Source: Ostrea edulis (taxonomy: Eukaryota). From it: a DNA stretch of 64,000 bases. Location of the stretch: NCBI RefSeq assembly GCF_947568905.1, contig NC_079164.1, positions 9,486,001-9,550,000 of the forward strand, read 5' to 3'. The notes under the pieces were generated by a model. It was not told where the DNA came from. It did not search any database and worked only from the letters and a program-made list of their open reading frames with translations. Shown here in pieces: positions 5,505 to 63,483 of this stretch (position 1 is the first letter of the stretch; the number at the start of each line of letters is the position of its first letter). Position numbers and translations under genes: made by a program.

Positions 5505-8500
5505 ATGAATTCGTTGAGAGTTTTACAAACTTTAACACAGTGCAATATTTCGAGGACAGTTTTTGTATCCGAGAGGATACTATCTTTTAAGGTTTTAAAT
5601 TGTGATAAAAATATTTGGAAATGTTTTTCAACCCAAAATCAAGAGAATACAAGTAAAGCTAGCAGAGAAAATTCGGATGCAAAGAAAACGACCGGTACTG
5701 AATTGGACGTCAAAAGAAAAAGTCCATACGAAGGCTTATCAGCAGGACAGAAAGGTTGTTTTTAATGAATACACAGACTTAACTATTGTCTGATTTTTTT
5801 AATCTTTTGGTAAAGAGACGTAAACAAAATGGTAAACTGTATAAAGTTCACTTTGCCGGCTACCGACCATGACCTTATGGATAAATCATGTTTGTCAACA
5901 ATCCCCACTGTAGCCAGTGTAGGGAATGACACTGCCCACATTTGTTGGAATTATTTTTGGTTTATTGCGTGTAATCTCCTCCTTTTTGTGTACATTTCTT
6001 CACAACATTCCACACCACGTTTAGCAAGACTGACTAGATATGGCAAGAAATTGGTGCAGTTTCCCTGGGTGGCAGTTTTGTAACCAGGTTACAATAGGGA
6101 CAATATTTTTATCCAATGTAGCATATCAAACATATGTCTTATAGTGTTGAAAATCTAGTAAATATCGACCACCTTTATTTTAAGGTTGCGAGAGTTACAG
6201 ACCATGCATCCTATCAACACCCACTTATCATTAAATACAAGGTGACAGGGGTTACGAGCCTTTCTCTCAACACCCACTTATCATTGAATGCAGGGTTACG
6301 GACCTTTCTCTCAATACCCACTTATCTTTAAATGCAGGGTTACAAGGGTTACGAGAGTTACAGGCCATTGTTTCAACATGAGATAAAGGTCCGTAACCCC
6401 TGTAACCCTGCATTTAACCTTGCAACACTGTTTTCTAGTGTAACCTGGTTACAAAATTGCTACCCAGGGAAACTGCTCTAATTTCTTGCCATATATGAGA
6501 CTGACAGATACTAAAATTGCTTACAAGTAACTCGGGCAGCCGGTATCGATAGAACAATTTACAACTCAGATCTAATGGTTCAACTTCATCATTTATCATC
6601 AAACATGTATCATCTGAATGACACAAGAAAATCCTGAAATAAGCTGTACACATTGGTACAATATTGAAAGATATAGATTTCAAAAGCATTATGATAAATT
6701 GTAATAGTTAGGGCTATACGGACCATGGATATCAGCATAGATAGCTCAGTGGTTAGAGCACCTGACTAGTAATGCAGGGGTCCTGGGTTCGAATCCCAGT
6801 CCAGCTGAAGATTTTCTCCTCTCCTATACTACAGTTGGTGCTGTTGACCACCCCTCCACTACACGTCCTGCCAGGGTAAAAAGAATCTGGGTTGTGTGTC
6901 TTCGAGGGCAAAGATAAATTAAGGGAGGGAGAAATGTAGTAGTTGGGGCTATACGGACTGTGGATATCGGCCTGGATAGCTCAGTGGTCAGAGAACCTGA
7001 CCAGTACGTAATACAGGGGCCCCGGGTTCGATTCCTGGTCCAGCCAAAGATTTTCTCCTCTCCTATACTACAATATTTTATAGCCTCATAATTACAATAT
7101 GATATCTTACTGTGACAAGAATACCAGATAATACAAACACTTCAATGTGTGACTAAATATTGCAATGAAATTATTGACATTTAGATAGCTTACAGTGCAT
7201 GTAATCCAGAGAACTAAGCTGAGTAACATTTAGAATAACTTTCTGTGTGTGTTTAGAACTTTTCCCAGACTCTACAGGTCAAATGTTACAACATTATCCC
7301 ATACAAAACACTGACGTATACTGCATACTGTGGGATCATTTTAATTCGGGGGTGGGGGGGGGGCAATGTTCGTGAATAAGCAAAATTTTCCTGGTTCGTG
7401 GGGATGTAATTTCATGGGTAAGTGATATACGATGTCACTAGGAGAGATAACTCACCTTGGTTTTTAAAAAAAATGTTCGAGGACATGTAACTTCATAAGT
7501 AAGAGTGACCCACAAAATCCACGAACATCACTCCCCCACAAACATTGATGATTCCACAGTATTAATTATAAGTGTCTCTTTAAATGACATGAAAACTAGC
7601 ACCAGTTAGACTGAAATATTTCTCTTATGGATCTCCTTACCACATGGAGTTAAAAGTATTGTGTAATATTTTATGTACAACTAAAAATACGAAGGATTTA
7701 TTATGAAAGACATGTTTGTATGTAAGACTGATACAGAGGAGTTGGAAAGTCCTTAAATTTCCCTACATAACTTTTACCTGTAGTTGTGGAGGCAGGAAAA
7801 GACTTGACCTACATTGGAGTCATCCTAATTGGAGGCGGTTTGATTGGTAAGAATGTTCAATCTAATTAAATCAATTCATAAAGTTTGATGACACAATATT
7901 CATTTCTGATTTTTTTCTTCTACCAATTGATAATTTTCAGAATTTCATGATATTTTCAAATCATTTACACACTGTATACTTTAAGCACTGTTTTATCCAA
8001 GTTCTGTGTTCTACAATCTGTGCATTAGTTTTGTGACTTGACCTTGTTGACTTTCTCACTGTTTTGCCAGGTTATGTGTTCTACAATTTGTACAAGGAGT
8101 TGTTTGCCACAGATGGAGCGACAAGTGTGTACAATGCAGCAGCAGACATTTGCAAAAAAGATGACAGGGTAAGAATCCATAATCGTCATATACACCGAAC
8201 AATTACAGAGTAGGAATACAATGTTGTATATACAGAACAATTACAGAGTAGGAATACAATGTTGTGTATACACCGAACAATTACAGAGTAGGAATACAAT
8301 GTTGTACTATATATACAGAGAACAATTTCAGAGTAGGAATACAATGTTGCACTATATATACAGAACAATTACAGAGTAATACAATGTTGTACTATATATA
8401 CAGAGAACAATTACAGAGTAAGAATACAATGTTGTATATACACAGAACAATTACAGAGTAGGAATACAATGTTGTATATACACAGAACAATTACAGAGTA

Positions 8501-23044: not shown

Positions 23045-23152
23045 AGTAAGGAATCTTCATTATTGATACAAACAAAAAATGCATGCATGAGTTTTATATA
23101 TAAAACTCATGCATGCATTTTTTGTTTGTATCAATAATGAAGATTCCTTACT
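23045..23152. repeat. Perfect 108-bp spacerless palindrome
   Basis: AGTAAGGAATCTTC...GAGTTTTATA|TATAAAACTC...GAAGATTCCTTACT; centre between 23098 and 23099. Confidence 0.92.
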
Positions 23153-38000: not shown

Positions 38001-38939
38001 AATGAAGCGCCAAATTAACATAAACTCAAATAAAGAAGATATTTTTAATTATAATTGATGCGTGCAACAAATCAATTATTGCTCTCATCAATTTAATTAA
38101 TTAATTCAATTGATGAGAGCAATAATTGATTTGATATGCACACATTAATTCATTTCATGAGAGGAAGAATTTATTTGATACGTGCATTAATTCATTTTAT
38201 GAGAGCTGTAATTGATTTGATGCATGCATAATTCAATGCTCTCATCAAATCAATTGATTTGTGCATCAATGTGGTGAAATTATTGCTTGCAAAAATTAAT
38301 TGATTTGGAGAACGTTATAAATGATTTGATGATCTCTTCAATTCAATTGAAGATATCTTTAATTATATTGCAATGCTTTTGTGTAAGGAAATAATGTGTG
38401 CATTGATTCTTTTATAGAGAGGAACAATTCAATTACAGAGATCATTAATTCAGTTGTGGATATATTGAATTGAAGATATCTTTATACAGTTGCTCTCTCT
38501 AAAAGAATAATATTGCGAGCATCAATGCATTAATGATATCATTAATTCTATCGAAGAAAGCAATGATTCAATCACTGTGCGCATTAATTGAATTGATGTG
38601 CGCTACAGTTAAAGAGAGCAATAATTCAATTATTGCAAGCATTATTTGAATTGATGAGCGCATTAATTGAATTAATGCTCTCTTCAATTGAATTGTAGCG
38701 CACATCAATTCAATTGTTGATATCATCAATTCATTTGAAGAGAGCAAGAATTCCATTATATAGCACTCATCAATTCAGCAGAATGATTAAAGTGTTTGGT
38801 GGACCGAATTTCATCTGATAATTTTAGATTTTAATACATGAATTGTTTTTTCTGTCACATACTTCTACTTTATTTATTCATTTTTTCTGTCTTATTTTTT
38901 GTTTTTGTTGCTGAAGTTTTGATAACATTGGTTGGTTTG

Positions 38940-42938: not shown

Positions 42939-43118
42939 TTAGTAATAGATGTATATGATATACAATTTAGAGCATTATTGTTTTTCGATTGTGCTGTTGA
43001 TATACAACATACGATATCTAATGTCGACAGATTCCCACACGAGCAAATCTTCATTTGTACATGCCTGTAAACTGTATGGTTTTATGCTGATAAACTGAAC
43101 TGGACTTAATATACCGAC

Positions 43119-43456
43119 AGTAGTATAAGGCGTCCCGATAGGGGGTTCAACTGAGTGCACTTTTTATGCAAATGAGGTCAAGTAAGGGTGTTTTTGATTG
43201 GTCAAGCGGTGTCGGGGTCAACGGAGTGCACTAGGACGGGGTCAACCCCAGCAGGGGTTGTAGAGCGGGTGAATAGGCTGGCCTATGGCCGCTGGTCTAT
43301 GATGCGGTACTTTCGCTTTGAGTTCCTGGAATGAGTTCCTGCTATTTTTCTGAAAATCCAGTGAAATCCTGTGTATTAAATCTAAAAGAATAACAGTGTA
43401 TTAAATCTAAAAGAATAACACAAGGTTTTAAGTTGACATGTTTATTAAAGAACAAT
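43119..43456 (+). repeat. Left terminal inverted repeat (338 bp)
   Basis: Reverse complement of 62897-63234 with no mismatch found by eye; extends 7 bp further with one mismatch; contains a 25-bp tandem duplication at 43371-43420. Confidence 0.95.
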
Positions 43457-43556
43457 GGTACAAGCATAGAACAATGCAAAACAATTCAATAAACATAAAA
43501 ACAGTTCAATAAGCATAAAAACAGTTCAATAAGCATAACAGTTCAAGCACAGTCCA

Positions 43557-44474
43557 TTACTTTCTGCTGAGTTTCTTCTTCTTTTTTGGCCGTTCTTCAG
43601 TAGGTGCGGTTGGATTCCACATCTCTAACGGTGTGTATTCTCTCTTCACAGGGGATTTTAAGCCAGGTACGGACCCAATCATCGCATCTATCTCCGCTTG
43701 TTCTTCTGGACACTCACTAATCCAGTGTCCTATTTTTCCGCATTTGAAGCAAGGATCCTTTTGTTTGGTTTTCTTGCTGGTCTGTTGAGAATCTGCTGAC
43801 CTCGATTTCTTACTGGTCTGCGGATAATCTGTTTTCTGTGGGCAATCCGGCGACCAATGTCCTGTTTCTCCACACGTGTAGCACGGGTTAGCAGTGTAAT
43901 CTGGAGTGTATTCCTTCCTAGGTTTTTTAGAAGTCAGCTCTTCCAGCTTCTTCAGTAGGATTGTGGTATGATTTCCAATCTCATTACTCAACACATTAAT
44001 GCGGTTAACGATCCCGTCTAGTGTCGTGGTAATGATGGCGAAATCGGTCCTGCTCATGGGGGAATCTTCTCCACCGAAGGGGGGTTTATCGTATAAGCCC
44101 ATCTCCAGTCCCGTAGCATCCTGTGAATCGGGAAAATAGAAGCCTAATCCGGGGTCTGTCGGATTCTGGCTAGGGAGGTAATCCGAGGTCTGGGCCATCT
44201 TCTCTTGTCGAGCAACGTGGTCTGAAGGCGTGAGATTGAAGCTCGTGGTCTGGTTCGAGGTCTGGGCCATCTTCTTCTCTTCTCTTCTTCTTTGAGGAAG
44301 GTAGTCTGGAGACGTGAGCAAGAAGTTCGAGGTCTTCCCCAGTTCAGTCTTCTGATCGTCAGTCTTAGCTTTCTTCAGTTCAATGTAGTCTTTCTGTGGT
44401 CCCATCTGCTTCTGTACCAGCTGATCTATTTTCTTCTGAGCTTTGTCCACAAATTCTAGTTGTTTCTGAGCCAT
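43557..44474 (-). CDS. Polinton accessory protein with two CCHC zinc knuckles and a C-terminal NLS
   Basis: CYTCGETGHWSPDC and CFKCGKIGHWISEC; ends RPKKKKKLSRK; TATAAAA at 44533-44527; AATAAA within the left TIR. Confidence 0.8.
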   Translation of the reverse strand: MAQKQLEFVDKAQKKIDQLVQKQMGPQKDYIELKKAKTDDQKTELGKTSNFLLTSPDYLPQRRREEKKMAQTSNQTTSFNLTPSDHVARQEKMAQTSDYLPSQNPTDPGLGFYFPDSQDATGLEMGLYDKPPFGGEDSPMSRTDFAIITTTLDGIVNRINVLSNEIGNHTTILLKKLEELTSKKPRKEYTPDYTANPCYTCGETGHWSPDCPQKTDYPQTSKKSRSADSQQTSKKTKQKDPCFKCGKIGHWISECPEEQAEIDAMIGSVPGLKSPVKREYTPLEMWNPTAPTEERPKKKKKLSRK

Positions 44475-44759
44475 GTCTTCTGGAAGGTGATTGAAGATCG
44501 AATGAGGACTGACACTGGGGCTCCGCTTTTATAGCCAGCAAAATGTCTAGACTATTCTGTCTCGTGAGGGGCACGTGGGGAGCACGTGGTTGCATCATCT
44601 TTTTCTGGAAAAACCGGTTTCAGCTAGAACATCGCGCGACCAGCGCGTGCTAGTGCACTAATTGAACTTGAAAAGCCGGTTTCTCGCGACCAGCGCGTGC
44701 TAGTGCACATTGGTACACATTGACTTTAGTGGAATGGAACTTATATTGGTGTTTAAAGT

Positions 44760-44775
44760 AGCCCTAAAAAGGGCT
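44760..44775 (-). terminator. Histone-type 3' stem-loop downstream of the Rep-like ORF
   Basis: Minus strand reads AC-AGCCCT-TTTT-AGGGCT-AC, 19 nt after the stop codon at 44795. Confidence 0.7.
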
Positions 44776-44794
44776 GTGCATGAAGTTTTTATTT

Positions 44795-45301
44795 TTAAAA
44801 ATGGCCGGCTTCATACGCAGGTTCTTCTATATACACGTGTAAGTCATGATCTTCGGATATAATGTGTTGTACTAATTGTCGAGCTCTTCTCCCGGGGAAA
44901 CGTATCTCTTCGACGGTTTCCCACATCCAGTGTGCATCCCAAAACATTACCCATACACTTCTCCGGTAACGTGGTTTCTCCAGTCGAATAAATCCTGATA
45001 CTTTTTGAGTGCCGTTCAATAACGTGTAAAACTGGTAAATCATGTACTGTATGAGGGGGGAATTTTTCAGGTACATGTCACTTAAACGCAGGTAAATATC
45101 CTCCACTGTTTCATGTGACCGCAATACATAGTCAAAACACCAATTTTTAGATCGCCCCCAGCGTAATCGATGGCGACATCTCTGTACTAAATTGTCCCAG
45201 ATCCCCATCTCGTCTACATAATCTTCTACTATGGTTAAATTCTCCACTGGTTGTATTCCCTGGCCGCGGCGTCTCGCTCTTAAAATTCTCCGTGTATCCA
45301 T
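44795..45301 (-). CDS. Degenerate CRESS-virus Rep-like (HUH-fold) protein
   Basis: KNWCFD ... IQYMIYQ ... GTQKVSGFI ... DAHW aligns by eye with nanovirus/circovirus Rep motifs I and II; the catalytic His and Tyr appear absent. Confidence 0.55.
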   Translation of the reverse strand: MDTRRILRARRRGQGIQPVENLTIVEDYVDEMGIWDNLVQRCRHRLRWGRSKNWCFDYVLRSHETVEDIYLRLSDMYLKNSPLIQYMIYQFYTLLNGTQKVSGFIRLEKPRYRRSVWVMFWDAHWMWETVEEIRFPGRRARQLVQHIISEDHDLHVYIEEPAYEAGHF

Positions 45302-45340
45302 GACTGAAGGTCAGACAAGAATGACTGTAGAAAAACCAGC

Positions 45341-45416
45341 TGACGTACAGGTGTTTGATCACGTGGTGCAGGTGTTTGATCACGTGATGCATAACCTTTA
45401 CCTATAAATACAGGTG
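45341..45416. promoter_or_regulatory. Divergent promoter with duplicated E-box module
   Basis: CAGGTGTTTGATCACGTG x2 (45348-45365, 45369-45386); TGACGT at 45341; TATAAATA at 45403-45410. Confidence 0.55.
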
Positions 45417-45440
45417 TTTTCTGAACGTTCGTTATTTACT

Positions 45441-45773
45441 ATGGGCGGCAGTGCTACTACGAGAATAAATGGATATAGTTATGTACTACAATGTATGAAC
45501 GTGGCCTTACATAATCCTCACATTCAAAATGCTCGTCAATTTGTACAACAGATGTCACCGGAGGTCAGAAATGTACATAGTTTTCAACGGATTGCTGATT
45601 CATTAGCGGAGAATACCAATACGGGACGTTTACTCATGATTTATTTGTATGCTGAGGAATTGAAACAGAATCTTCCAGACCAGATGAGTGACATTGATCG
45701 GATCTTACGCGATTGTTTACAAAAAGGATTCGTGGAACTGATTCGTATGAAAGGAATGGCTGCCCTGTTATAA
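45441..45773 (+). CDS. Bcl-2-like small helical protein, paralog A
   Basis: FQRIADSLAENTNTGRLLMIYLYAEEL resembles a BH1 region (FxxIAxxL...NWGR); first ATG after the TATA box. Confidence 0.55.
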   Translation: MGGSATTRINGYSYVLQCMNVALHNPHIQNARQFVQQMSPEVRNVHSFQRIADSLAENTNTGRLLMIYLYAEELKQNLPDQMSDIDRILRDCLQKGFVELIRMKGMAALL

Positions 45774-45810
45774 AACAAGAACGTTTTAGAATTTTTTCAT
45801 TTTGATCATC

Positions 45811-46164
45811 ATGGCTGAATTGAACAACAACGTTCTTACCGCTGTATTACAGTATTTCGAGGACTACAAAGAATCGGTGAACAACGCTCGTAGCGCTGCA
45901 TTACAGTGTATCAAGGACTGGAAAGAAAAACAGCCGTTGAGATATAAATTCGCCATGAAGTTGTTGATCTTTTGGGAATTTCCTATGACCTTATATGAAT
46001 ATTCCAGCGTTTGCAAGCATATAGCCGACAACCTGAACAGAGAGTCTGGATTGATCATGATTTATACCATGGACCAAGAATTTAGACGACGGGAACCTGA
46101 GAAGACTGGGGCGATTGTAGCGATTACCGATCACTGGTTGGAAAAGGTGTATAAAAAAACCTAA
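45811..46164 (+). CDS. Paralog B of the small helical (Bcl-2-like) family
   Basis: Shares FPMTLxEY...LIMIY...EF...PE...I..I...WL..VY with paralogs C and D. Confidence 0.6.
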   Translation: MAELNNNVLTAVLQYFEDYKESVNNARSAALQCIKDWKEKQPLRYKFAMKLLIFWEFPMTLYEYSSVCKHIADNLNRESGLIMIYTMDQEFRRREPEKTGAIVAITDHWLEKVYKKT

Positions 46165-46192
46165 CCGTTTTCTTTTCCTTTATTCCTGGAGG

Positions 46193-46540
46193 ATGGCCAG
46201 CAGTGACAACATCGCAGAAAAAGCGCATAACCATGCATTAGAATGGGTCGAGAAAATGCAAGACGATACGGTGTTTCAAGCTGTTAAAAATTATCTGATA
46301 GCGGGGGTGTTTCCAATGACTCTGGACGAATATACAGATCTACGGAACCGGATATACATCAATCTCTATAACGATGCGGGATTGATGTTAATTTATGTTG
46401 TGGGGGAGGAATTCAAGAAACGCATGCCTGAAAAAATCGCCGAGATTGAAAGTATCACCAAGGACTGGCTTCGAGAAGTATACATAAAGTGTGAAGAACT
46501 TAATTCATTTCATTTATTCCCGGAGGATGGCCAGCAGTGA
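46193..46540 (+). CDS. Paralog C of the small helical (Bcl-2-like) family
   Basis: FPMTLDEY...GLMLIYVVGEEFKKRMPEK...WLREVY. Confidence 0.6.
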   Translation: MASSDNIAEKAHNHALEWVEKMQDDTVFQAVKNYLIAGVFPMTLDEYTDLRNRIYINLYNDAGLMLIYVVGEEFKKRMPEKIAEIESITKDWLREVYIKCEELNSFHLFPEDGQQ

Positions 46541-46832
46541 CCACATCACAGAGAAAGCGATAGTTTATGTATTGGATTATCTCACAGACATTCATTCTGG
46601 GCAGATTGAATTTGTGTTACACTATATGCGAGAAGAATTATTTCCCATCAGCTTAAAGGACTATCCATGTCTCTGTCAGTATTTGATCGAGAACCGGATC
46701 ACCCCGCAAGCCTTAGTATTGATTCATTTAATGGGCCGGGAATTGAAACGAATTCGACCCACAGACAGAGCAGAAATCGAGAAAATCAGACTACGATGTC
46801 TTCGAGAGATGTACGTCAAGTTAAACGTGTGA
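46527..46832 (+). CDS. Paralog D of the small helical (Bcl-2-like) family
   Basis: Starts MASSDHITEKA, a DNA-level copy of the paralog C start; FPISLKDY...LIHLMGREL...CLREMY. Confidence 0.6.
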   Translation: MASSDHITEKAIVYVLDYLTDIHSGQIEFVLHYMREELFPISLKDYPCLCQYLIENRITPQALVLIHLMGRELKRIRPTDRAEIEKIRLRCLREMYVKLNV

Positions 46833-47014
46833 CTTTTAATCTGGATCATAATGAAGTGTATCTGTTACCCGAAGAAGACCGGACAAGTATCTGGATGACT
46901 GTAGCCGCTGATCGATATCGATTTCAACGCAGGATTCGAGAAATGGGAAAAATGTTGGACCCTATTTTAAAAAGACATGTGCATTGGTGTTGTGTGTGGG
47001 AGTTATGTATTTGA
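46796..47014 (+). CDS. GADD34/ICP34.5/DP71L-like PP1-targeting protein (72 aa)
   Basis: KRVTF (RVxF) followed by WMTVAADRYRFQRRIREM, matching the PP1/eIF2alpha-binding module; AATAAA at 47028-47033. Confidence 0.8.
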   Translation: MSSRDVRQVKRVTFNLDHNEVYLLPEEDRTSIWMTVAADRYRFQRRIREMGKMLDPILKRHVHWCCVWELCI

Positions 47015-47450
47015 AATATGTGACATGAATAAAATTGTTTACACGAAAGCTGTGTTTGGTTGAGTCTCTCAGAGAAGGGTTTATTTGTTGAGGAATCCAG
47101 AAAATCCTAAAGGTAGAGTGAAAATCGAATCAATTAAGGTGTTTTCTATCGAATAGACCTTATGAGATGTTTTTAGGGATGTACATGGTCGAGAAATAAA
47201 TTTTTAAAGAGGCGGTGAAGAAACATTGAACCTCGACTCGACCTCTTTAACCGCTGTTTCTTTGAAAACTATGCGACGTAGCAAAATAAAAATAAGTTTA
47301 ACGCATTCGCCGTCTCAGAATCTATCAGATTAAATCTACCTTGCACAGATATCGAATGTCTAGAAAAAGACAATGAGAAAAAAACTCTCTACTCGAAAGC
47401 ACAAATCCGCCATTTTGACGGCCACCATCTTGGCTTCGTCTCCGAAGCGA

Positions 47451-47489
47451 GGGATGTTTTCGAGGAGGTCCGCGCTTTCCTGATATATA
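47451..47489 (+). promoter_or_regulatory. Histone H4 site-II/HINFP-like promoter element plus TATA, copy 1
   Basis: GGGATGTTTTCGAGGAGGTCCGCGCT followed by TATATA at 47484-47489; 25/26 identical to 49175-49200. Confidence 0.55.
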
Positions 47490-47571
47490 CCGGCGCACTC
47501 GCCAGTTCGCTTCACTGGTGATCCAGCACAGTTGTAGAAGATTTTTGAAGATTATTTAAGAAGAAAGAAGA

Positions 47572-48360
47572 ATGGCTACAAGAAGAGACCCGCTCTACAA
47601 TTTCCAGACCTTGCCTGGCTTTCGGTACCGGCTGGTAGTGGTGGCTGAGGAACGGGTAGGGGAGAATTGGGTTGTGCGTTCTGAGAACGACCTGAGCACC
47701 TTCTCCCCTTTCGACCAGAGTGGGGTCCGTGAGATCATCTGCCGGGTGCGGGCCGAGTATGAAGGGAGGGCACCCCGCCGCCGCACCGCTCGAATCTCCA
47801 CGGCCACGAGACCGCGCCGACGGGCCCCACAGCCACCCTCACCACCACCACCTTACTCCCCGGCGACGCCTACAACACCACCACCAGCGATCCCATCGGC
47901 ACCAGTGGAATACAGCCCGGTGCCGATGAGCGACTCACCAGCGTCACCGGTGGAGTATTCACCGCGGTCACCGTCCCCCGCACCACCTCCCAGTCCAGCC
48001 CAGAGTCCGTCGCTGTTGGTGGCAGCTACGTCATCACCACCGAGACCAGCAGCCCCTGCAAGACCCCCACCACCTACCATCCGGTTTGCAGGGAGGACTC
48101 CGCCACCGAGACCAACCCACGCACCGGTGGCAACTCATCCCCCGAGGAACCACCCTATGACTGTCCCTGGCTGGGCAGATAGGGCGGTTCCCATCTGGTT
48201 TAAGTGTCCTGTCTGCTGGCAAGACAGGGTACACTCTGGAATTACGTGTAGGGGATGTGGGCAGCGCCCAGCTTGCTGCTCGTGCGTGGAAGAGTTACAG
48301 GAGCGGCGACACACCCGGGGACGGTGCCCGTTATGCCGGTTTACCGGAAGCAGGGAATGA
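47572..48360 (+). CDS. Proline-rich protein with PPxY motif and C-terminal RING-like finger
   Basis: PPPPYSP; CPVC...CRGC...CCSC...CPLCR. Confidence 0.75.
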   Translation: MATRRDPLYNFQTLPGFRYRLVVVAEERVGENWVVRSENDLSTFSPFDQSGVREIICRVRAEYEGRAPRRRTARISTATRPRRRAPQPPSPPPPYSPATPTTPPPAIPSAPVEYSPVPMSDSPASPVEYSPRSPSPAPPPSPAQSPSLLVAATSSPPRPAAPARPPPPTIRFAGRTPPPRPTHAPVATHPPRNHPMTVPGWADRAVPIWFKCPVCWQDRVHSGITCRGCGQRPACCSCVEELQERRHTRGRCPLCRFTGSRE

Positions 48361-48382
48361 AAGTCGGTCCTTAGGACCAAAC

Positions 48383-48403
48383 GGCCCTTTTCAGGGCCAC
48401 CAA
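48383..48403 (+). terminator. Canonical histone mRNA 3' stem-loop
   Basis: CCAAAC-GGCCCT-TTTC-AGGGCC-ACCAA, 22 nt after the RING ORF stop; purine-rich GAAAAGA at 48411. Confidence 0.88.
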
Positions 48404-48510
48404 CTTTTTTGAAAAGACACTTTTTATGGCAAAAATCAAGAAACACACAAGTTTGTTTTAAAAAAGTTTTTATTAACACAAGTAATAGCTAGAATAAAGC
48501 TATAATAAAG

Positions 48511-48699
48511 TTACATTTTCTTGACAATGTAAACATGTTTATGATACTGATAAGCAAAGTCACAAATCCATCGTCTATAATGAGTCCAATTGCCTCCGGC
48601 TAATCCATGAGGTTTCACCGTTAAACAGTTACATTGTTGTACAATAGCATCCACCCAAGGTAGAGATAATACATCTCCTCGTAGATCCGTCACCGACAT
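48511..48699 (-). CDS. Hypothetical 62-aa protein
   Basis: Its ATG overlaps the stop of the upstream Cys-rich ORF; minus-strand AATAAA at 48474-48469. Confidence 0.35.
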   Translation of the reverse strand: MSVTDLRGDVLSLPWVDAIVQQCNCLTVKPHGLAGGNWTHYRRWICDFAYQYHKHVYIVKKM

Positions 48700-49091
48700 G
48701 CTGGTTGACAGGTCTCACAGGTACACGTTAACCGGGGTTCTTGACTGTAAGGACAATGTTGAAACAGCCGGGGATCAAACTTTCTCTGAGTCCAGCGCTC
48801 TCTAAACTCCTGACAGATCTCACAGGTACAGTCCTTATGTGCTATTTCTTCTTCAGGGGTGATGGTACAATGCTGCGGACACTTACACGGTAGCCAGGGT
48901 TCTCTAGTGTGACTACAACATTTATAGACAAAGGGATAATACGTCAGCTCTGCCAATCTCTCTATCCACTTCTGTTTGGCCAGGATGTTTTCTTTTTTAT
49001 AATGAAAACACCCACAAGTGCTCCAAGGTCCTCGGCAATACCCACACACTAGTACATCTTTCTCATCGTCCGCGTACCGTTCAAACGACAT
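48690..49091 (-). CDS. Cys-rich protein with three C-x5-P-x3-C-x-C repeats
   Basis: CGYCRGPWSTCGC, CSHTREPWLPCKC, CPYSQEPRLTCTC; upstream TATA-like, TGAGTCA and TGACGTCA elements. Confidence 0.65.
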   Translation of the reverse strand: MSFERYADDEKDVLVCGYCRGPWSTCGCFHYKKENILAKQKWIERLAELTYYPFVYKCCSHTREPWLPCKCPQHCTITPEEEIAHKDCTCEICQEFRERWTQRKFDPRLFQHCPYSQEPRLTCTCETCQPACR

Positions 49092-49174
49092 GATTGAGAA
49101 AAAATGGTAACAAGTGACCTATGTATATAGTGTTTTTGATGAGTCATCAACATGACGTCAGCCATCTGAGGTAG

Positions 49175-49213
49175 GGGATGTTTTCGAGGACGTCCGCGCT
49201 CTCGCCTTTTTAA
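49175..49213 (+). promoter_or_regulatory. Histone H4 site-II/HINFP-like promoter element, copy 2
   Basis: GGGATGTTTTCGAGGACGTCCGCGCT, containing ACGTCCGCG. Confidence 0.55.
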
Positions 49214-49265
49214 ACGAGCGCAACGTCAAAATCGGGCATTCCGATTTTTTAAAGGAACCAGAACC

Positions 49266-49562
49266 ATGAGCCGTAGAGTAGGACCAGACCCTACAGTGAA
49301 TGATTATTGTATCAAATGGGAGGAGGATTGGGAGCAAGAGATTGCCCCGCCGGCCTCACGGGAGGCTCTTCCCCCACCGCCCATGAGCCAGGATCTGCCC
49401 CCGCCAGAGGAAAACTGGGACGCAGAGTTAGAAGTGGTGCAACGGCCTCCGGGGAGATTGTTTTTTAAACACGGCTGGTTGCCCGTTTTTGTGTTTGACC
49501 ACGAGCAACCCCCGGAGGAGCAGAAAAAGAAGAGAAGAAAGAAGAAGAAGAACAGACAGTGA
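49266..49562 (+). CDS. Hypothetical 98-aa acidic/Pro-rich protein with a basic C-terminal NLS
   Basis: ACCATG start downstream of the repeated promoter; ends KKKRRKKKKNRQ. Confidence 0.6.
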   Translation: MSRRVGPDPTVNDYCIKWEEDWEQEIAPPASREALPPPPMSQDLPPPEENWDAELEVVQRPPGRLFFKHGWLPVFVFDHEQPPEEQKKKRRKKKKNRQ

Positions 49563-49673
49563 GGGGGACCGAGAAGAAAAGAAGAGAAGGAGAAGAGAAG
49601 AAGAGAAGGAGAAGAAGGAGAAGAGAGAAGAGAGAAGAAGAGAAAAGACCAAGAACAGAGAGAGAAAGAAAAC

Positions 49674-49694
49674 AGCCCTTTTCAGGGCTACCCA
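49674..49694 (+). terminator. Histone-type 3' stem-loop with compensatory A-U first pair
   Basis: AAAAC-AGCCCT-TTTC-AGGGCT-ACCCA; GAAAGA at 49703-49708. Confidence 0.85.
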
Positions 49695-49792
49695 TTCTTT
49701 TTGGAAAGACATGGTTGATTACAATGACAAGAAATTTTTTTTTTTCCAACGTTTTATTAAACTCCAACTATGAACAATAACAATAACATAGT

Positions 49793-56299: not shown

Positions 56300-56625
56300 G
56301 ATTTCTTACAAATCTTGCCACACACAAACGAACCCAATCCTTTTTGGTGGATGAGTATACCTCGTCGTTTTTTCACGGGTTGAGTCCGGACTAAGCGTCT
56401 TAAGATGTGTTTCTTTCGACCCAGTTGTCGCTTCTGAGTAGGATTGAGAGGAATCACCCCTTTTAATAGATTGTACACAATCTCACAAATCTTTAAAATG
56501 CAGTCATTGGAACAATGTTTCAACACCTCTGTCTTTAATTTGCTGGAATAGTGAGGAGCCGCTAACGTCTGCAAGAGCGGTAAATGAGGGCGTAATCGAC
56601 ATTCACACTTCTTCGTATGAGCCAT
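56296..56625 (-). CDS. Basic Polinton-type core protein (109 aa)
   Basis: ICEIVYNLLKGVIPL...KRRGILIHQKGLG; similar to the N-terminal part of the 302-aa ORF; TATAAAA 33 nt upstream. Confidence 0.7.
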   Translation of the reverse strand: MAHTKKCECRLRPHLPLLQTLAAPHYSSKLKTEVLKHCSNDCILKICEIVYNLLKGVIPLNPTQKRQLGRKKHILRRLVRTQPVKKRRGILIHQKGLGSFVCGKICKKS

Positions 56626-58829: not shown

Positions 58830-61800
58830 TTAATACCCGTAAGGCAGCGTGTCATAGTTATGAATACGTTGACGTTTATCATACACCATGCGGTATTTCT
58901 TCACCAGAGGAATGGTTCGCACATCATGTTGGCGGGTTCGTTGAATAAAGTGCGGATAGCTGACATGGACTTCTTCTTCTTCTCCTTTTAACATTTTTTC
59001 CAACGTATCGAGAGACACGACTCTAGAGGCACGATAATTGAGTGTCAATCCTTTGACTTTGCAGACAGATTTTTCCCCCTGGGTCTCGTATGCATAATTT
59101 TTGGGCCCGCCCGACATGTACTTGATGATACGATCTCCACCCAATTCATCGGTCCAGCCGCCTAAACTGTTGATAATGGTCGGATTGAACTGGGTCTCGT
59201 CGTGCTGATAGATGATACTATCCGTGTCAAAGTATAAGACACGCTCTCCCAAAGGCTGTAACGTCTCGTACAAATGTAAACGAGCATGAGCTGTTGTAAA
59301 ACACGCCAGCACCACGTTTCCAAAGGGACAGTCTTCTAAAAATTCTTCTTTCTCCTGATAATTGATCAGCATCATATCACATTCGGGGCGTTCACGATTT
59401 TCTAAGAGTTCGATGCCTTTGACTTCTAAAGTGGCATCTTGTAATTTCTGTTGTAATTCTTCTTCTTCCGTGAGATACAGGGATTTGGGTAATTGTAATC
59501 GTTGAGCAAATTTTCCCCACAAACAATTTAAAAAGAGTTTGGCAATGGTTCTTCGGACCGGATTTTTCTGGATGTCTGCCGGATTCATGGCAATGCCTTC
59601 TCGTTGCTGAATTTCCTCAATGTAATGTTGCTGCTGTTGGGCTGTTTGACAATCCTCGGGGAATCCGGAAGCTTCTTGTTTAATTTTCAAAAAGGTGTTG
59701 ATATACGCTCGAAATAAGTGGTCACTGGTTTTCTCAAAATGCCAAACTTCGTAAATGCGGTCGAGACGATAGCCTAGATCTAATGCTTTGTGAAGTTCGG
59801 TGGTCACCCAGGTGCCCGTGAGACTGCGTTCAGAATCGGTGTGCTGGCACCGCTCGTCGGGTCCTAAGTTGCGCTGTTCCGCACAGGTGCGGCATAAGGG
59901 AAAGAGTAATTTACCCCCGGTCTTGTAAGGTAATACGGGGTGATACAGCTCTCGGGGTGGGAGGACACGACAACGAATGAGCCCGAAATAGTCTCTGACA
60001 TCGGTGAAATGGCTGGTGATGACTTGGGGATGTTGGACGGGAAATGGCTTGTATTTCAACACGTACGGGTACAGGGAACAGACATCCACGTATCGCATGT
60101 CACCCTCCTCACAATACAGTCGTGTAGCATTGGTCCGGCCTCCGTACAAAGCGTCACGGGGATTCAAAGGATCTTGTATATCGACTCCTTGTAAAAATTC
60201 CTGTAAGTCGGGATTGGTCTGGGTCTGACGATCAAACTCGTGTTCCCATATGCTCACGACTGTATAGCCTTGGTCTTCTAAAGCACTGGCTCGTTTTAAG
60301 GTGTCCAGGTAGAGGTCTTGATACGTATGCTGAACACGATGAGGATGCATGTCAGTCAACAGATTCGGGAAACAGGTGGGACAGCCGTGCCAGTAACAGC
60401 CATAGAATTCGTACACGATACGAGATTCCTCATCATACCCATCTACTGTATAGGGTCCAAGCGTGACTTCGCCCCCATTTCTAGCATGTCGTATGCAGTG
60501 ATGTTGATGTTCTAGCCAGGCGAACCATCGACAAGCTTTAGCTGAATATCGTCGTGCTGGCCGGTAGCCCATATTGGGAATGATGGCGATGGTATTTTCA
60601 ACCATGAATCCTCGTCGGTAGGCTAAATTAGCCGTGCTGGCAAACGTGATGGATTCTTGAAAGGGGTCTACTTCCACCAGATCAAACAGGGTGGACTTGA
60701 AATGGGCACAACACCGGCGTAAAATATCCACATCCGAGATGCAGTAAGCTAAGAATTCTTTCTGGAAATCAAAGACTTTGCCCTCTTGTTGATGGTACCA
60801 AGTATAGAAGGCTTCACGATTGGCGGTGGACATATCGTCAGGATTGTAGAAATGAGCGGCCGGGTAAGGACCCACATACTGCTGGTTCTCTGTCGTGTTG
60901 AAAAAGTGCGGGAAATATCCTTTTTTCAATTCCGTTAATCCGAAAGCAGAGGGCATCTTGGCAAGAGCAAAGGGTAGAAAGTTGTAAGAATCGATGAATC
61001 TCAACCCCAAGACTTGCATGGATAAGATTTTACTGCCGTTCAGGATGACGGTGGGTTTGATACACGCCGTGTGAACCAGGTAATTCAAAATAAACTGCCC
61101 ATCGTATCCTTTGAAATTGTGGGCAATGATGGTGGCTTCATCGTGTTTGAGTTCCACATGGCCTTGCTCATCGGTCTCGCTCTGTAAGAGCCATTCCATA
61201 AACTGTTTTAACGTGTCGGGTCCTTGAAATAGGAAGCGGCGTTGTGATCCGAATCCTTCACAATGAGAACAGGGCTTGTCGATATCCACACTGTCGCAAT
61301 GTTGACACACACGTTCTGCCACGCATAAATTGGGAATGTGAATACCGTTTTCCTGACTGCATTCGAAATCGTAATAAATGTATATTTTCAACTCCTCTTC
61401 TTCTTCTTTTTCTTTCTTAGGTTTGGGTTTCGTCTGTACAAAGCAGTGATGAGGCATGGTGACGACTTTGTGACAGATGCGGCATTCGGTTTGACCCCCA
61501 CACGCGTGGCGTTTTAATAATTTCTTGGACATCCATTTCTGACACTGGTTACAACGCCCCATTAAACTGCAGACCGTGGTCGTTGTATTACTGCTGTAGG
61601 GTTTTAAATGGTTCTGGTAACAAGCTGCATTTCTGAAAAATCCCTTACAATGAGGGCAATTCGTCTGAGTCCCGTCCGGGGTACAGGGGGTATCGGCTAA
61701 ACAAAATGAGCATCGATGAGGACAGACGGTCCGATGATCTTCAATGTGACTGTAACCAACATCGCAATAATCGCAATAGTATCCGTTTTCCGTCACTCCA

Positions 61801-62792
61801 GGCATAGACACAATGGCATCGTAATGCTCGTTATCCAGCAGGATATTCAAACAAGTCCCGTACCCCGGTCCTTTGTAAATAGGTTCCAGTCGTAAACGAG
61901 TTGTATTCGTTTTGAATTGAAATATTTTCAATCGATACTGTGGGGCGAGCGCGTGCTGTAATTGCTCCCATTCACGTGGCCCACACGGCTGGTTCATAAC
62001 ACACCCAGCTTGTTCCATCAAGGCTATCGCTTCTCGTTTCTGATCGAGAGAATCTTTATCCCCTTTTCTCATGCGTAACCATTTCGTTTCCCATGCCGGG
62101 TCGTTTGATTTCTGGCTGTGTAGACGTGCTACCACAATAGCCCGGGACAAGCAGAGAGAATCCTCAGGATTTTGAATGCGAACGATCGCTCTCTTGGAGG
62201 TTTTGAATTTTTCCTTATCCACGTGTAGATGTTTTTTCTTAGTGCACCCGCTGCCTTGTGGATATTTGACATGGAAAAAATCCATCTGCACTGCCCCGTC
62301 GGTGATTAGGAATTCCTTTTTAGATTGCTGGACGGATTCTATTTTGTTCAGAATTTTGTCCTCGTTGAGCTGATTGGACTGCGTAAATTCGTACCAAATA
62401 GCTGAATCCAGAGACGGGTGCCGAATATTTAAACGTAGATAATCATTGGGATTGCACTGCATTTCCTGTTTCACATTTTTTAACATATCCCGGAAGAGCC
62501 GACGAATGAAGGCTGTATTTTCTTTCTCTGGAATAGGTTTGAAAGCAACATTGTAGACATTTTCCTTGACTTTAAATTTCCGTGATTGACGTCCTCGTTC
62601 CAGTTGAATTTTGTAATAATCCGAAATGAGTTTCTTTTTTCCCCCTCCCCGCTGTAAATACTGTAGTCGTCGTTGATTCTCTCTGCGGAGTTGTAATTCA
62701 CGCTGCCGTTGTCTGTTCAGCTGATCATTCAAAAATCTCAATCGCTGTTCAATATAACTCCGTGGAAGTCCAGTAGGTAACTTGTCTGACAT
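58830..62792 (-). CDS. Protein-primed family B DNA polymerase with N-terminal TP/OTU-like/Zn regions and a Vsr-like insertion
   Basis: ExoI YYDFEC, ExoII AHNFKGYD, YVDVCSLYP, KLFLNCLWGKF, YFDTDS. First ATG at 62792 (the ORF track starts at a TTG, 62813); TATA ~40 nt upstream. Confidence 0.97.
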   Translation of the reverse strand: MSDKLPTGLPRSYIEQRLRFLNDQLNRQRQRELQLRRENQRRLQYLQRGGGKKKLISDYYKIQLERGRQSRKFKVKENVYNVAFKPIPEKENTAFIRRLFRDMLKNVKQEMQCNPNDYLRLNIRHPSLDSAIWYEFTQSNQLNEDKILNKIESVQQSKKEFLITDGAVQMDFFHVKYPQGSGCTKKKHLHVDKEKFKTSKRAIVRIQNPEDSLCLSRAIVVARLHSQKSNDPAWETKWLRMRKGDKDSLDQKREAIALMEQAGCVMNQPCGPREWEQLQHALAPQYRLKIFQFKTNTTRLRLEPIYKGPGYGTCLNILLDNEHYDAIVSMPGVTENGYYCDYCDVGYSHIEDHRTVCPHRCSFCLADTPCTPDGTQTNCPHCKGFFRNAACYQNHLKPYSSNTTTTVCSLMGRCNQCQKWMSKKLLKRHACGGQTECRICHKVVTMPHHCFVQTKPKPKKEKEEEEELKIYIYYDFECSQENGIHIPNLCVAERVCQHCDSVDIDKPCSHCEGFGSQRRFLFQGPDTLKQFMEWLLQSETDEQGHVELKHDEATIIAHNFKGYDGQFILNYLVHTACIKPTVILNGSKILSMQVLGLRFIDSYNFLPFALAKMPSAFGLTELKKGYFPHFFNTTENQQYVGPYPAAHFYNPDDMSTANREAFYTWYHQQEGKVFDFQKEFLAYCISDVDILRRCCAHFKSTLFDLVEVDPFQESITFASTANLAYRRGFMVENTIAIIPNMGYRPARRYSAKACRWFAWLEHQHHCIRHARNGGEVTLGPYTVDGYDEESRIVYEFYGCYWHGCPTCFPNLLTDMHPHRVQHTYQDLYLDTLKRASALEDQGYTVVSIWEHEFDRQTQTNPDLQEFLQGVDIQDPLNPRDALYGGRTNATRLYCEEGDMRYVDVCSLYPYVLKYKPFPVQHPQVITSHFTDVRDYFGLIRCRVLPPRELYHPVLPYKTGGKLLFPLCRTCAEQRNLGPDERCQHTDSERSLTGTWVTTELHKALDLGYRLDRIYEVWHFEKTSDHLFRAYINTFLKIKQEASGFPEDCQTAQQQQHYIEEIQQREGIAMNPADIQKNPVRRTIAKLFLNCLWGKFAQRLQLPKSLYLTEEEELQQKLQDATLEVKGIELLENRERPECDMMLINYQEKEEFLEDCPFGNVVLACFTTAHARLHLYETLQPLGERVLYFDTDSIIYQHDETQFNPTIINSLGGWTDELGGDRIIKYMSGGPKNYAYETQGEKSVCKVKGLTLNYRASRVVSLDTLEKMLKGEEEEVHVSYPHFIQRTRQHDVRTIPLVKKYRMVYDKRQRIHNYDTLPYGY

Positions 62793-62896
62793 GATGTCGA
62801 AAGTGACACCCAATGCACCGCGCGCCGCTTTATATATATTACCTGTAGACAGCGCTGGGTAAAACTAGGGACCGTGCCAGCTCTGGGGATTGTACT

Positions 62897-63234
62897 ATTG
62901 TTCTTTAATAAACATGTCAACTTAAAACCTTGTGTTATTCTTTTAGATTTAATACACTGTTATTCTTTTAGATTTAATACACAGGATTTCACTGGATTTT
63001 CAGAAAAATAGCAGGAACTCATTCCAGGAACTCAAAGCGAAAGTACCGCATCATAGACCAGCGGCCATAGGCCAGCCTATTCACCCGCTCTACAACCCCT
63101 GCTGGGGTTGACCCCGTCCTAGTGCACTCCGTTGACCCCGACACCGCTTGACCAATCAAAAACACCCTTACTTGACCTCATTTGCATAAAAAGTGCACTC
63201 AGTTGAACCCCCTATCGGGACGCCTTATACTACT
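62897..63234 (-). repeat. Right terminal inverted repeat (338 bp)
   Basis: Reverse complement of 43119-43456. Confidence 0.95.
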
Positions 63235-63483
63235 ACCGACGTATCAAGCACGTGGAACCAGGATGCTGATCCTTCACTTTTTTGACAACGTTCATTTTCA
63301 AAAATTATTATTTTCATACACAAACTAAGTTAATTTCACATGTGAAATAAGATTAATTGGCGGATTGGCCCCCATATCCCATTCTCTTTGGTGATAGTAA
63401 TGAATGGTAAAAATGTAATAATGAATGAACTGATGGATTGAAGAACAAACGAAGCCCCCTCGCTCCAATTTATAGGAGTAAGA

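Follow-up and report, generated by a model that had tools for sequence, protein, structure and literature searches.

Does a signal that normally marks only histone messenger RNAs also end the transcripts of genes that have nothing to do with histones? This question is raised by a stretch of 64,000 nucleotides of the flat oyster (Ostrea edulis) genome (assembly GCF_947568905.1, contig NC_079164.1, positions 9,486,001 to 9,550,000; hereafter the window), in which a preliminary description made from the sequence alone had identified three hairpins, each placed in sense orientation just after an accessory ORF of a Polinton. In order to answer it we first characterized the element, then scored the hairpins and their surroundings, and finally considered whether the element may borrow the histone RNA-processing pathway of the cell.

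The Polinton element

Using profile searches and self-comparison of the window, we delimited a Polinton/Maverick-type element of about 20.1 kb:

43105-63248, Polinton/Maverick-type element
43105-43463, left terminal inverted repeat (TIR)
62890-63248, right TIR

The two TIRs are 359 nt long and 98 % identical (99.7 % over 345 nt in a second comparison), and the GC content of the element (0.44–0.47) exceeds that of the flanks (about 0.35). No other copy was found in the window. Pfam searches detected a protein-primed family B DNA polymerase (DNA_pol_B_2, E 2.3e-57) and a retroviral-type integrase (rve, E 1.6e-11, plus Chromo), as well as a packaging ATPase (Pox_A32, 29.8 bits against a cut-off of 22.8) and BIR and RING domains. 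The adenoviral-type maturation protease (Peptidase_C5) fell just below its cut-off (21.0 against 21.3 bits), such that the pair of ATPase and protease is only half supported and does not settle this trait either way. Similarly, the 467 aa ORF next to the protease showed no Pfam or PDB sequence match and its fold was not modelled, which leaves the presence of a double jelly-roll major capsid protein undecided. A short target-site duplication directly at the ends is not present, as the 6 bases outside the two TIR ends differ; an 8-base direct repeat lies 13–14 nt further out, for which we have no explanation. The element additionally carries IAP, Bcl-2-like and PP1-binding ORFs, in keeping with the capture of host genes by Polintons.

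Hairpins behind three non-histone ORFs

The hairpins, which we term SL1–SL3, lie in the accessory-gene arm of the element, where SL1 and SL2 belong to units A and B, respectively. The features of this arm are as follows:

47451-47476 (+), 26 nt promoter-like element of unit A, followed by TATATA at 47484-47489
47572-48360 (+), orf262, conserved N-domain, Pro-rich linker and C-terminal Cys-rich RING-like finger
48378-48423 (+), SL1, RF00032 Histone3 match (stem-loop 48383-48398)
48406-48419 (+), downstream element of SL1 (TTTTTGAAAAGACA; AAAGA at 48413-48417)
48493-48509 (+), two AATAAA signals (at 48493 and 48504) about 95–106 nt after SL1, a possible fallback poly(A) site
49175-49200 (+), 26 nt promoter-like element of unit B, followed by a TATA-like TTTTTAAA near 49208
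49266-49562 (+), orf98, small acidic protein with a basic tail
49669-49714 (+), SL2, sub-threshold RF00032 match (stem-loop 49674-49689), behind a purine-rich tract
49698-49711 (+), downstream element of SL2 (TTTTTGGAAAGACA; AAAGA at 49705-49709)
44795-45301 (-), orf168, Rep/E1 origin-binding-like (predicted HUH-fold) domain protein
44788-44793 (-), AAUAAA between the orf168 stop codon and SL3
44734-44780 (-), SL3, weak RF00032 match (stem-loop 44775-44760)

The observation made in the preliminary description was confirmed. The hairpins read GGCCCT/TTTC/AGGGCC (SL1), AGCCCT/TTTC/AGGGCT (SL2) and AGCCCT/TTTT/AGGGCT (SL3, minus strand), and the flanks and the AATAAA at 48493 were likewise as given there. 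The first pair is G-C in one hairpin and A-T in the other two, having changed on both sides of the stem, as would be expected of the compensatory change that had been claimed. A purine-rich GAAAAGA starts 12 nt after the SL1 stem and GGAAAGA 13 nt after the SL2 stem, again in agreement with the distance of 12–13 nt noted previously.

To score family membership, which had been put forward in advance as a means of refuting the idea, we searched the window with the Rfam covariance model of the histone stem-loop (RF00032, Histone3). SL1 scored 40.2 bits (E 1e-8), above the curated gathering score of 34 bits, and is thus a bona fide member, whilst SL2 (30.8 bits, E 3.9e-5) and SL3 (22.3 bits, E 0.06) fall below it; these E-values are already multiplied by 4227 families. 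These were the only three RF00032 matches in 64 kb, all within 5 kb of the accessory arm, and there was no hit in the other 30 kb even at E ≤ 10. A degenerate pattern with up to 1 mismatch gave 3 hits against 0.06 expected. The window contains 62 perfect hairpins of 6 bp and 4 nt, but only these three, plus one of unrelated sequence at 56468, have G at stem position 2 and U at loop positions 1 and 3. All three were retained in minimum free energy folds, and all have the 6 bp stem, 4 nt loop, G-C at stem position 2 and U at loop position 3 that serve as diagnostic criteria (bioRxiv 10.64898/2026.10.14.759114). Moreover, the 16 nt core of SL1 plus its ACC flank is identical to an RNA of mouse H4-12 used as a specific SLBP competitor (PMC1635294), and the core is also one of the human histone stem-loop cores listed in PMC7807067. 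In contrast, the A-U first pair of SL2 and SL3 is absent from the 12 human cores listed in that paper, and neither 16-mer is printed in any paper of the literature searched. With regard to the A-rich 5′ and ACC-type 3′ flanks of the family, SL1 (CCAAAC/ACCAA) and SL2 (AAAAC/ACCCA) conform, whereas SL3 (TGCAC/ACTTT) does so only partly, giving a mixed outcome for the set as a whole.

We next examined the position of each hairpin relative to the preceding gene. The stop-to-stem gaps are 22 nt (SL1), 111 nt (SL2) and 19 nt (SL3), of which the first and last sit close to the 23–31 nt typical of histone genes, whilst that of SL2 lies outside the 25–60 nt (to the conserved block) reported as important for regulated decay; as such, this criterion speaks neither clearly for nor clearly against the set. 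The random chance that all three start within 120 nt downstream of a same-strand stop codon is about 4e-4. AAAGA, the complement of the universally conserved UCUUU box of U7, lies 15 nt after the SL1 stem and 15–16 nt after the SL1 and SL2 stems taken together, and aligns with the A-rich part of the Rfam model, but it is absent within 32 nt downstream of SL3. Pairing of the downstream elements with the 5′ end of the host U7 snRNA had been named as a test; full pairing with the oyster U7 was not computed, and the complementarity to the U7 box therefore leaves this point undecided. The downstream motif occurs only after SL1 and SL2. Furthermore, SL1 and SL2 share a 42 nt module of hairpin plus downstream element (86 % identity) although their surroundings and ORFs are unrelated, and units A and B also share the 26 nt promoter-like element (96 % identity), which occurs only twice in the window, with 0 expected. 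No AATAAA or ATTAAA lies between the stop codon and the hairpin in A or B, whereas neighbouring genes have one 14–43 nt after their stops. Poly(A) signals do, however, follow SL1 (as listed above) and SL2 (at 49756, 67 nt after it), and SL3 has the AAUAAA just 5′ of it, the nearby signal having already been noted previously along with its weaker 3′ flank.

None of the three preceding ORFs encodes a histone, as no match to a histone family was obtained in Pfam even at E ≤ 10. For orf262, relatives at 99, 85 and 77 % identity were found in Ostrea edulis and at 42–45 % elsewhere; it belongs to no Pfam family and gave only weak PDB profile hits to RING domains (E 0.3–0.6). For orf98, which also has no Pfam family, a relative of 75 % identity and likewise 98 aa was found. 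Relatives of orf168 were found at 86, 47, 42 and 39 %, Pfam Viral_Rep was detected below threshold in 3 of 6 members, and the core of an AlphaFold2 model (pLDDT 70–86) returned circovirus Rep domains as top Foldseek hits (E 9.5e-5). These relatives are non-histone families.

Possible use of the histone RNA-processing pathway

The best reading of these data, which we hold to be somewhat more likely than not, is that at least two mini-genes use histone-type SLBP/U7 3′-end processing. In this view, a young Polinton integrated in the Ostrea edulis genome carries small, intronless accessory genes built like histone genes, each with a TATA-type promoter, a short leader, one ORF, and then a histone-type 3′ stem-loop and a purine-rich downstream element; the modules shared by units A and B look like a co-regulated cassette design. 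Most likely, the host stem-loop binding protein (SLBP) would bind the hairpin on the nascent RNA, host U7 snRNP would pair with the AAAGA-containing element, and the pre-mRNA would be cut a few nucleotides after the stem, in ACCAA or ACCCA. The result would be poly(A)-less mRNAs of about 0.45–0.9 kb whose export, translation and decay follow those of histone mRNAs, that is, SLBP-rich states such as S phase, oocytes and early embryos. Bivalve histone mRNAs use stem-loops with purine-rich elements, so the host pathway exists. What our analysis demonstrates is the existence of the hairpins, their membership of or likeness to the family, their positions, the shared 5′ and 3′ modules and the conserved non-histone ORFs, whilst SLBP binding, U7 pairing, cleavage, the lack of poly(A) and the timing are inferred, there being no transcript, SLBP or U7 evidence of any kind; the integrated copy may also be transcriptionally silent. 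Cleavage 4–5 nt after the stem, as in histone-type processing, was not tested, since there are no RNA or binding data. The reading applies with fair confidence to units A (orf262/SL1) and B (orf98/SL2), whereas SL3 behind orf168 is a weaker, possibly decaying or poly(A)-coupled copy. The interpretation offered in the preliminary description, that the Polinton routes some early transcripts through the histone pathway, is thus supported only in part: the nature of the element, the non-histone ORFs, the identity of SL1 with a proven SLBP ligand and the two downstream elements bear it out, but early timing, coupling to S phase or oocytes and escape from poly(A)/PABP-directed shut-off are inference only.

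Of the alternatives, the one least easily set aside, although unlikely, is that the hairpins act in RNA without defining the 3′ end, so that transcripts read through to the downstream AATAAA/ATTAAA and are polyadenylated, the stem-loop being an internal SLBP-binding element that affects stability or translation; or that both kinds of end are made, as for H2A.X. The poly(A) signals near all three hairpins fit this view, dual processing is documented for H2A.X and for replication-dependent histone genes when U7 processing fails, and a mussel histone H1 gene with a poly(A) signal has been cited. Additionally, one NCBI gene model from another copy (P0003) joins most of orf262 to orf98 and skips SL1, implying read-through. 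This model is a prediction only, however, and would also splice out the promoter of unit B; moreover, SL1 and SL2 carry a correctly spaced downstream element, which is needed only for cleavage, and the downstream signals may equally serve the converging minus-strand genes or act as fallback sites. It is also possible, though again unlikely, that the hairpins are inert relics, either pieces of host histone 3′ flanks picked up by recombination or decaying copies with no present role, as might be suggested by the sub-threshold scores and first pair of SL2 and SL3, the lack of a downstream element after SL3 and the capture of host genes by Polintons. In disagreement with this, no histone coding remnant lies upstream, each hairpin sits directly behind a different conserved ORF in sense orientation, the first-pair change is compensatory, and SL1 and SL2 keep stem, loop, flanks and downstream element whilst their surroundings are unrelated. 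Conservation of the hairpins behind orthologous ORFs in other copies and relatives, named beforehand as a possible refutation, was not examined.

We consider it very unlikely that the palindromes act at the DNA level, as binding sites for an element protein such as the Rep/E1-like orf168 product or for a host factor, their likeness to histone stem-loops being incidental. They are perfect 6+6 palindromes and the element encodes a predicted origin-binding-like fold, but a DNA palindrome has no strand preference, yet loop and flanks are asymmetric and always oriented with the upstream ORF; the RF00032 score includes the flanks and downstream region, and an exact match to a proven SLBP ligand is unlikely to be incidental. 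Least likely of all are chance hairpins of no significance: whilst perfect hairpins of this size are common in the window, the excess over expectation, the E-values of SL1 and SL2, and the clustering of all three in the element behind ORFs argue against this.

Relation to known systems and significance

Compared with the 3′ ends of metazoan replication-dependent histone mRNAs (the RF00032 stem-loop plus histone downstream element, cleaved via SLBP, U7 snRNP and CPSF73), the genes described here encode a RING-like protein, a 98 aa acidic/basic protein and a Rep/E1-like domain protein and belong to a mobile virus-like element. In the literature, histone mRNAs are called the only known cellular mRNAs of this kind, and SLBP CLIP found no non-histone client. 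Genes with dual stem-loop and poly(A) processing, such as H2A.X and replication-dependent histone genes with cryptic downstream poly(A) sites, similarly have a stem-loop plus downstream element followed within about 70–110 nt by AATAAA/ATTAAA, but those are histone genes, and whether both kinds of end are made was not ascertained for the oyster element. With the Polintons/Mavericks and adintoviruses of animals the element shares protein-primed PolB, rve integrase, A32-type ATPase, long TIRs, an adenoviral-type protease (here sub-threshold) and an arm of host-interaction accessory genes such as IAP and Bcl-2-like (gene classes named in PMC8502044). No paper that we could search mentions stem-loops, SLBP or polyadenylation signals for these elements (PMC8502044 has 0 occurrences) or combines these terms, and we found no published precedent, in line with the preliminary description, whose author was aware of none. 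Giant viruses mark the ends of their mRNAs with hairpins instead of AAUAAA (the mimivirus 'hairpin rule'), a parallel that was not tested here, but those are AT-rich palindromes of variable sequence, handled by viral cytoplasmic machinery and followed by polyadenylation, and are not the histone stem-loop of the host.

A more far-reaching possibility, which we offer tentatively as slightly less likely than not, is that a family of oyster Polintons has taken over the complete SLBP/U7 histone mRNA pathway for non-histone genes. These would be the first natural non-histone, and first virus-like, clients of that pathway, and expression of a RING-like protein, a small acidic protein and a Rep/E1-like origin-binding-type protein would be tied to S phase or to the SLBP-rich germline and early embryo, with mRNAs independent of poly(A).

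A mobile virus-like element that places the histone signal behind its own genes would be a natural experiment showing that the signal is portable to unrelated ORFs. It would also suggest a way for a nuclear DNA element to couple gene expression to host DNA replication or to the germline without a cell-cycle-regulated promoter. Furthermore, it would mean that poly(A)-selected RNA-seq systematically misses such transcripts, which bears on how Polinton activity is judged, whilst RF00032 behind non-histone ORFs provides a cheap sequence marker for surveying other elements.

Histone-type stem-loops and their match to RF00032

In order to verify the hairpins reported in the preliminary description, we first read each of them directly from the sequence and found that the observation held, with all three present exactly as had been described:

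48383-48398 (+): SL1, GGCCCT/TTTC/AGGGCC
49674-49689 (+): SL2, AGCCCT/TTTC/AGGGCT
44775-44760 (-): SL3, AGCCCT/TTTT/AGGGCT

Each hairpin is kept in the minimum-free-energy (MFE) fold of its surroundings. Generic perfect hairpins with a 6-bp stem and a 4-nt loop are common, with 62 found in the window; however, only these three, plus one with an unrelated sequence, have G at stem position 2 and U at loop positions 1 and 3. A degenerate histone-type pattern gave 3 hits where 0.06 are expected, and chance hairpins were therefore rejected as an explanation. Clusters of AT-rich perfect or near-perfect palindromes (MITE-like) at 38053-38758 and 23055-23142 gave sub-threshold microRNA-family hits.

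The score against the Rfam Histone3 covariance model (RF00032) had been put forward in advance as a criterion on which the proposal could fail, and we therefore applied it to the sequence. By the curated criterion, one hairpin is a member of the family and two are look-alikes. No Histone3 match exists in the remaining 30 kb, even at E ≤ 10.

RF00032 matches of the three hairpins (gathering score 34 bits; E-values are already multiplied by 4227 families)
Hairpin; match; bits; E-value; relative to gathering score
SL1; 48378-48423 (+); 40.2; 1.2e-8; above
SL2; 49669-49714 (+); 30.8; 3.9e-5; below
SL3; 44780-44734 (-); 22.3; 0.06; below

In the same window, two tRNA-like sequences at 6735-6806 and 6970-7046 (+) pass the Rfam tRNA cut-off (41.8 and 37.2 bits) with mismatched acceptor pairs, although ARAGORN called neither of them; these may be tRNA-derived repeats or pseudogenes.

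The Polinton element and the genes preceding the hairpins

The hairpins lie inside a 20.1-kb Polinton/Maverick element bounded by 359-nt inverted repeats (43105-43463 and 62890-63248, 98 % identity). Its genes include a protein-primed PolB (58830-62813, minus strand), an IAP with BIR and RING domains, an A32-type ATPase, an rve integrase with a chromodomain and an adenoviral-type protease that falls just under the Pfam cut-off. No stop codons or frameshifts were seen in these core ORFs. In two places neighbouring ORFs overlap in different frames, and our data did not distinguish between overlapping genes, splicing or damage. A PDB sequence search with the 467-aa capsid candidate found nothing, and a sigma-70/terminator scan, which is not meaningful for a eukaryotic element, was likewise uninformative. 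Named protein hits identify the host as Ostrea edulis. There is no second copy or fragment of the element in the window. The 8-base string ATGCTGAT occurs on both sides of the element, at 43084-43091 and 63263-63270, 13-14 nt outside the detectable ends of the inverted repeats; as the 6 bases directly adjacent to the two ends differ, no classical target-site duplication is seen.

We next examined the three ORFs in front of the hairpins, all of which are conserved and none of which is a histone:

47572-48360 (+): orf262, preceding SL1
49266-49562 (+): orf98, preceding SL2
45301-44795 (-): orf168, preceding SL3

A Pfam search with these ORFs returned no family at the default threshold, and at E ≤ 10 gave only a weak Viral_Rep hit for orf168. 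As such, a hidden histone gene upstream of the hairpins was rejected, as no histone fold was found. For orf262, relatives were found at 99, 85 and 77 % identity in Ostrea edulis and at 42-45 % elsewhere; its 90 % identity cluster has 54 member sequences, so the family is multi-copy there. The protein has a conserved N-domain, a proline-rich linker and a C-terminal Cys-rich finger that weakly resembles RING domains, weak RING hits being all that PDB profile searches returned, whilst an AF2 model (pLDDT 47) was too poor to use for a fold search. orf98 has a 75 % identical relative of the same length, so the stop codon, and with it the 111-nt gap to SL2, is real. orf168 has relatives down to 39 % identity, and PDB profile searches gave nothing useful for it; however, a moderately confident AF2 core (pLDDT 70-86) has circovirus Rep HUH domains as its best structural matches (E 9.5e-5, target TM 0.61), followed by papillomavirus E1 DNA-binding domains. 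This predicted origin-binding fold agrees with sub-threshold Pfam Viral_Rep hits in 3 of 6 family members, although the sequence likeness to Viral_Rep is only weak and the presence of the catalytic HUH and Tyr residues was not examined. All of these comparisons were made at the protein level. Conservation of the hairpins behind orthologous ORFs in related elements, which the preliminary description had set as a test able to refute its proposal, was not examined, as no DNA of other copies or relatives was included; this is the largest gap in the evidence. The surrounding part of the element holds further ORFs and repeats:

43557-44474 (-): a 305-aa ORF with two CCHC zinc knuckles just inside the left inverted repeat; the nearest AAUAAA is 111 nt downstream, inside the repeat
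44632-44658 and 44682-44708: a 27-nt direct repeat between SL3 and the CCHC ORF
45340-45390: two copies of a ~22-nt repeat containing CACGTG in the 113-nt divergent region between orf168 and the paralogue cluster, followed by TATAAATA at 45404; these, like the 27-nt repeat, are probably promoter elements
45414-46832 (+): four tandem paralogous ORFs of about 110-120 aa (15-24 % pairwise identity, shared motif near the C-terminus), the first with a weak Pfam Bcl-2 hit (E 0.008); no stem-loop follows them, the next signal being an AATAAA at 47028
46667-47014 (+): an ORF with a near-threshold Pfam PP1c_bdg hit (25.7 against 26.1 bits, E 1e-5), that is, a GADD34/PPP1R15-like PP1-binding region, overlapping the fourth paralogue in another frame
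48511-49091 (-): a Cys-rich 133-aa ORF and an overlapping 62-aa ORF between the two plus-strand hairpin units, with an AAUAAA at 48474-48469; no family was found for either

Organization of the hairpin-containing units

The gaps between stop codon and stem are 22 nt for SL1, 111 nt for SL2 (through an AGAAGA-type purine tract) and 19 nt for SL3. A survey of 2,281 metazoan species reports a median gap of 30 nt and typical values of 23-31 nt, and names G-C at stem position 2 and U at loop position 3 as the diagnostic positions; all three hairpins have both. Moreover, the SL1 core with its ACC flank is letter for letter the RNA used as a specific competitor for human SLBP in work on mouse H4-12 (PMC1635294), and is also one of the 12 human histone cores listed in PMC7807067. 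None of those 12 begins with A, so the A-U first pair of SL2 and SL3 is unusual; neither of their 16-mers is printed in any paper of the literature searched, and whether such variants occur in real histone genes was not examined. After SL1 and SL2 comes the same motif, TTTTTG(A/G)AAAGACA, found nowhere else in the window in exact form, with its AAAGA lying 15-16 nt after the stem. AAAGA is the complement of the UCUUU box that a U7 survey calls universally conserved in the histone-binding region of U7 (PMC5054213). SL3 has nothing comparable. A second small hairpin (5-bp stem, 3-nt loop) lies immediately 5' of SL1 at 48366-48378 (+), and in the MFE fold the downstream AAAGA element is itself sequestered in a hairpin, as PMC1635294 reports for mouse histone 3' UTRs.

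A self-comparison of the sequence showed that unit A (orf262 and SL1) and unit B (orf98 and SL2), whose ORFs are unrelated, share the 42-nt hairpin-plus-downstream module (86 % identity) as well as a 26-nt element located 96-121 and 66-91 nt upstream of their start codons (96 % identity), each followed by a TATA-like box. TGAGTCA and TGACGTCA motifs (AP-1- and CRE-like) sit just upstream of the 26-nt element of unit B, at 49141-49161. The implied mRNAs are about 0.9 and 0.45 kb, intronless and with short leaders, which is the design of a histone gene. Neighbouring genes instead have AATAAA close to their stop codons, 14 nt after the PP1-binding-like ORF and 35 nt after the protease; the element therefore seems to use two kinds of 3' signal.

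Proposed 3'-end processing and alternative readings

The interpretation in the preliminary description, that these genes use the histone pathway, is partly supported, with the case strong for SL1, good for SL2 and weak for SL3. We hold with moderate confidence that at least units A and B use histone-type 3' processing. What our analysis establishes is the signals themselves, their positions, the family score, the identity to a proven SLBP ligand and the shared modules, whilst binding, pairing, cleavage, the absence of poly(A) and any S-phase or germline coupling are inferred. There is no RNA evidence, and the physiological part of the proposal is untested. The RNA element is already known, but its use behind non-histone genes of a virus-like element appears to be undescribed. 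In the literature searched, no report of histone stem-loops on viral or transposon genes was found: no paper combines them with Polintons, Mavericks, adintoviruses or transposons in this sense, none describes viral transcripts ending in a histone stem-loop, and the adintovirus paper does not mention stem-loops, SLBP or polyadenylation. A 2026 survey looked for SLBP-pathway proteins in large DNA viruses and found none, although this is a different question.

A number of observations weigh against this reading. Besides the lack of RNA evidence and the two hairpins that fall below the Rfam cut-off, SL2 is far from its stop codon, and one source describes a distance of 25-60 nt as critical for regulated decay. 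SL3 has an AAUAAA at 44793-44788 immediately before it and no downstream element, and may be a decaying copy or part of a polyadenylated end. Poly(A) signals also follow SL1 (48493 and 48504) and SL2 (49756, ATTAAA); such downstream sites are, however, also normal behind true histone genes and are used when U7 processing fails, and H2A.X makes both kinds of end. Furthermore, one NCBI gene model from another copy (P0003, mapped to 47572-49559) joins the first ~196 residues of orf262, without its zinc finger, to orf98 through a 23-residue piece at 48771-48839 that is antisense to the 133-aa Cys-rich ORF, and thereby skips SL1. It may be a prediction artefact or a spliced read-through; as it is a computed model that would also splice out unit B's own promoter, we treat it as a caveat rather than as evidence of read-through. 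A role of the palindromes as binding sites at the DNA level was considered and rejected on account of the asymmetry of loop and flanks.

In the mechanism that we propose, host SLBP would bind the hairpin on the nascent RNA, U7 snRNP would pair with the AAAGA-containing element, and cleavage would fall in ACCAA or ACCCA a few nucleotides after the stem. Bivalve histone mRNAs do use stem-loops and purine-rich elements, so the host pathway is present (PMC6210712). A Rep/E1-like origin-binding-type protein among the three would fit a replication-linked expression window, although that is speculation. The result of such processing would be poly(A)-less mRNAs handled like histone mRNAs.
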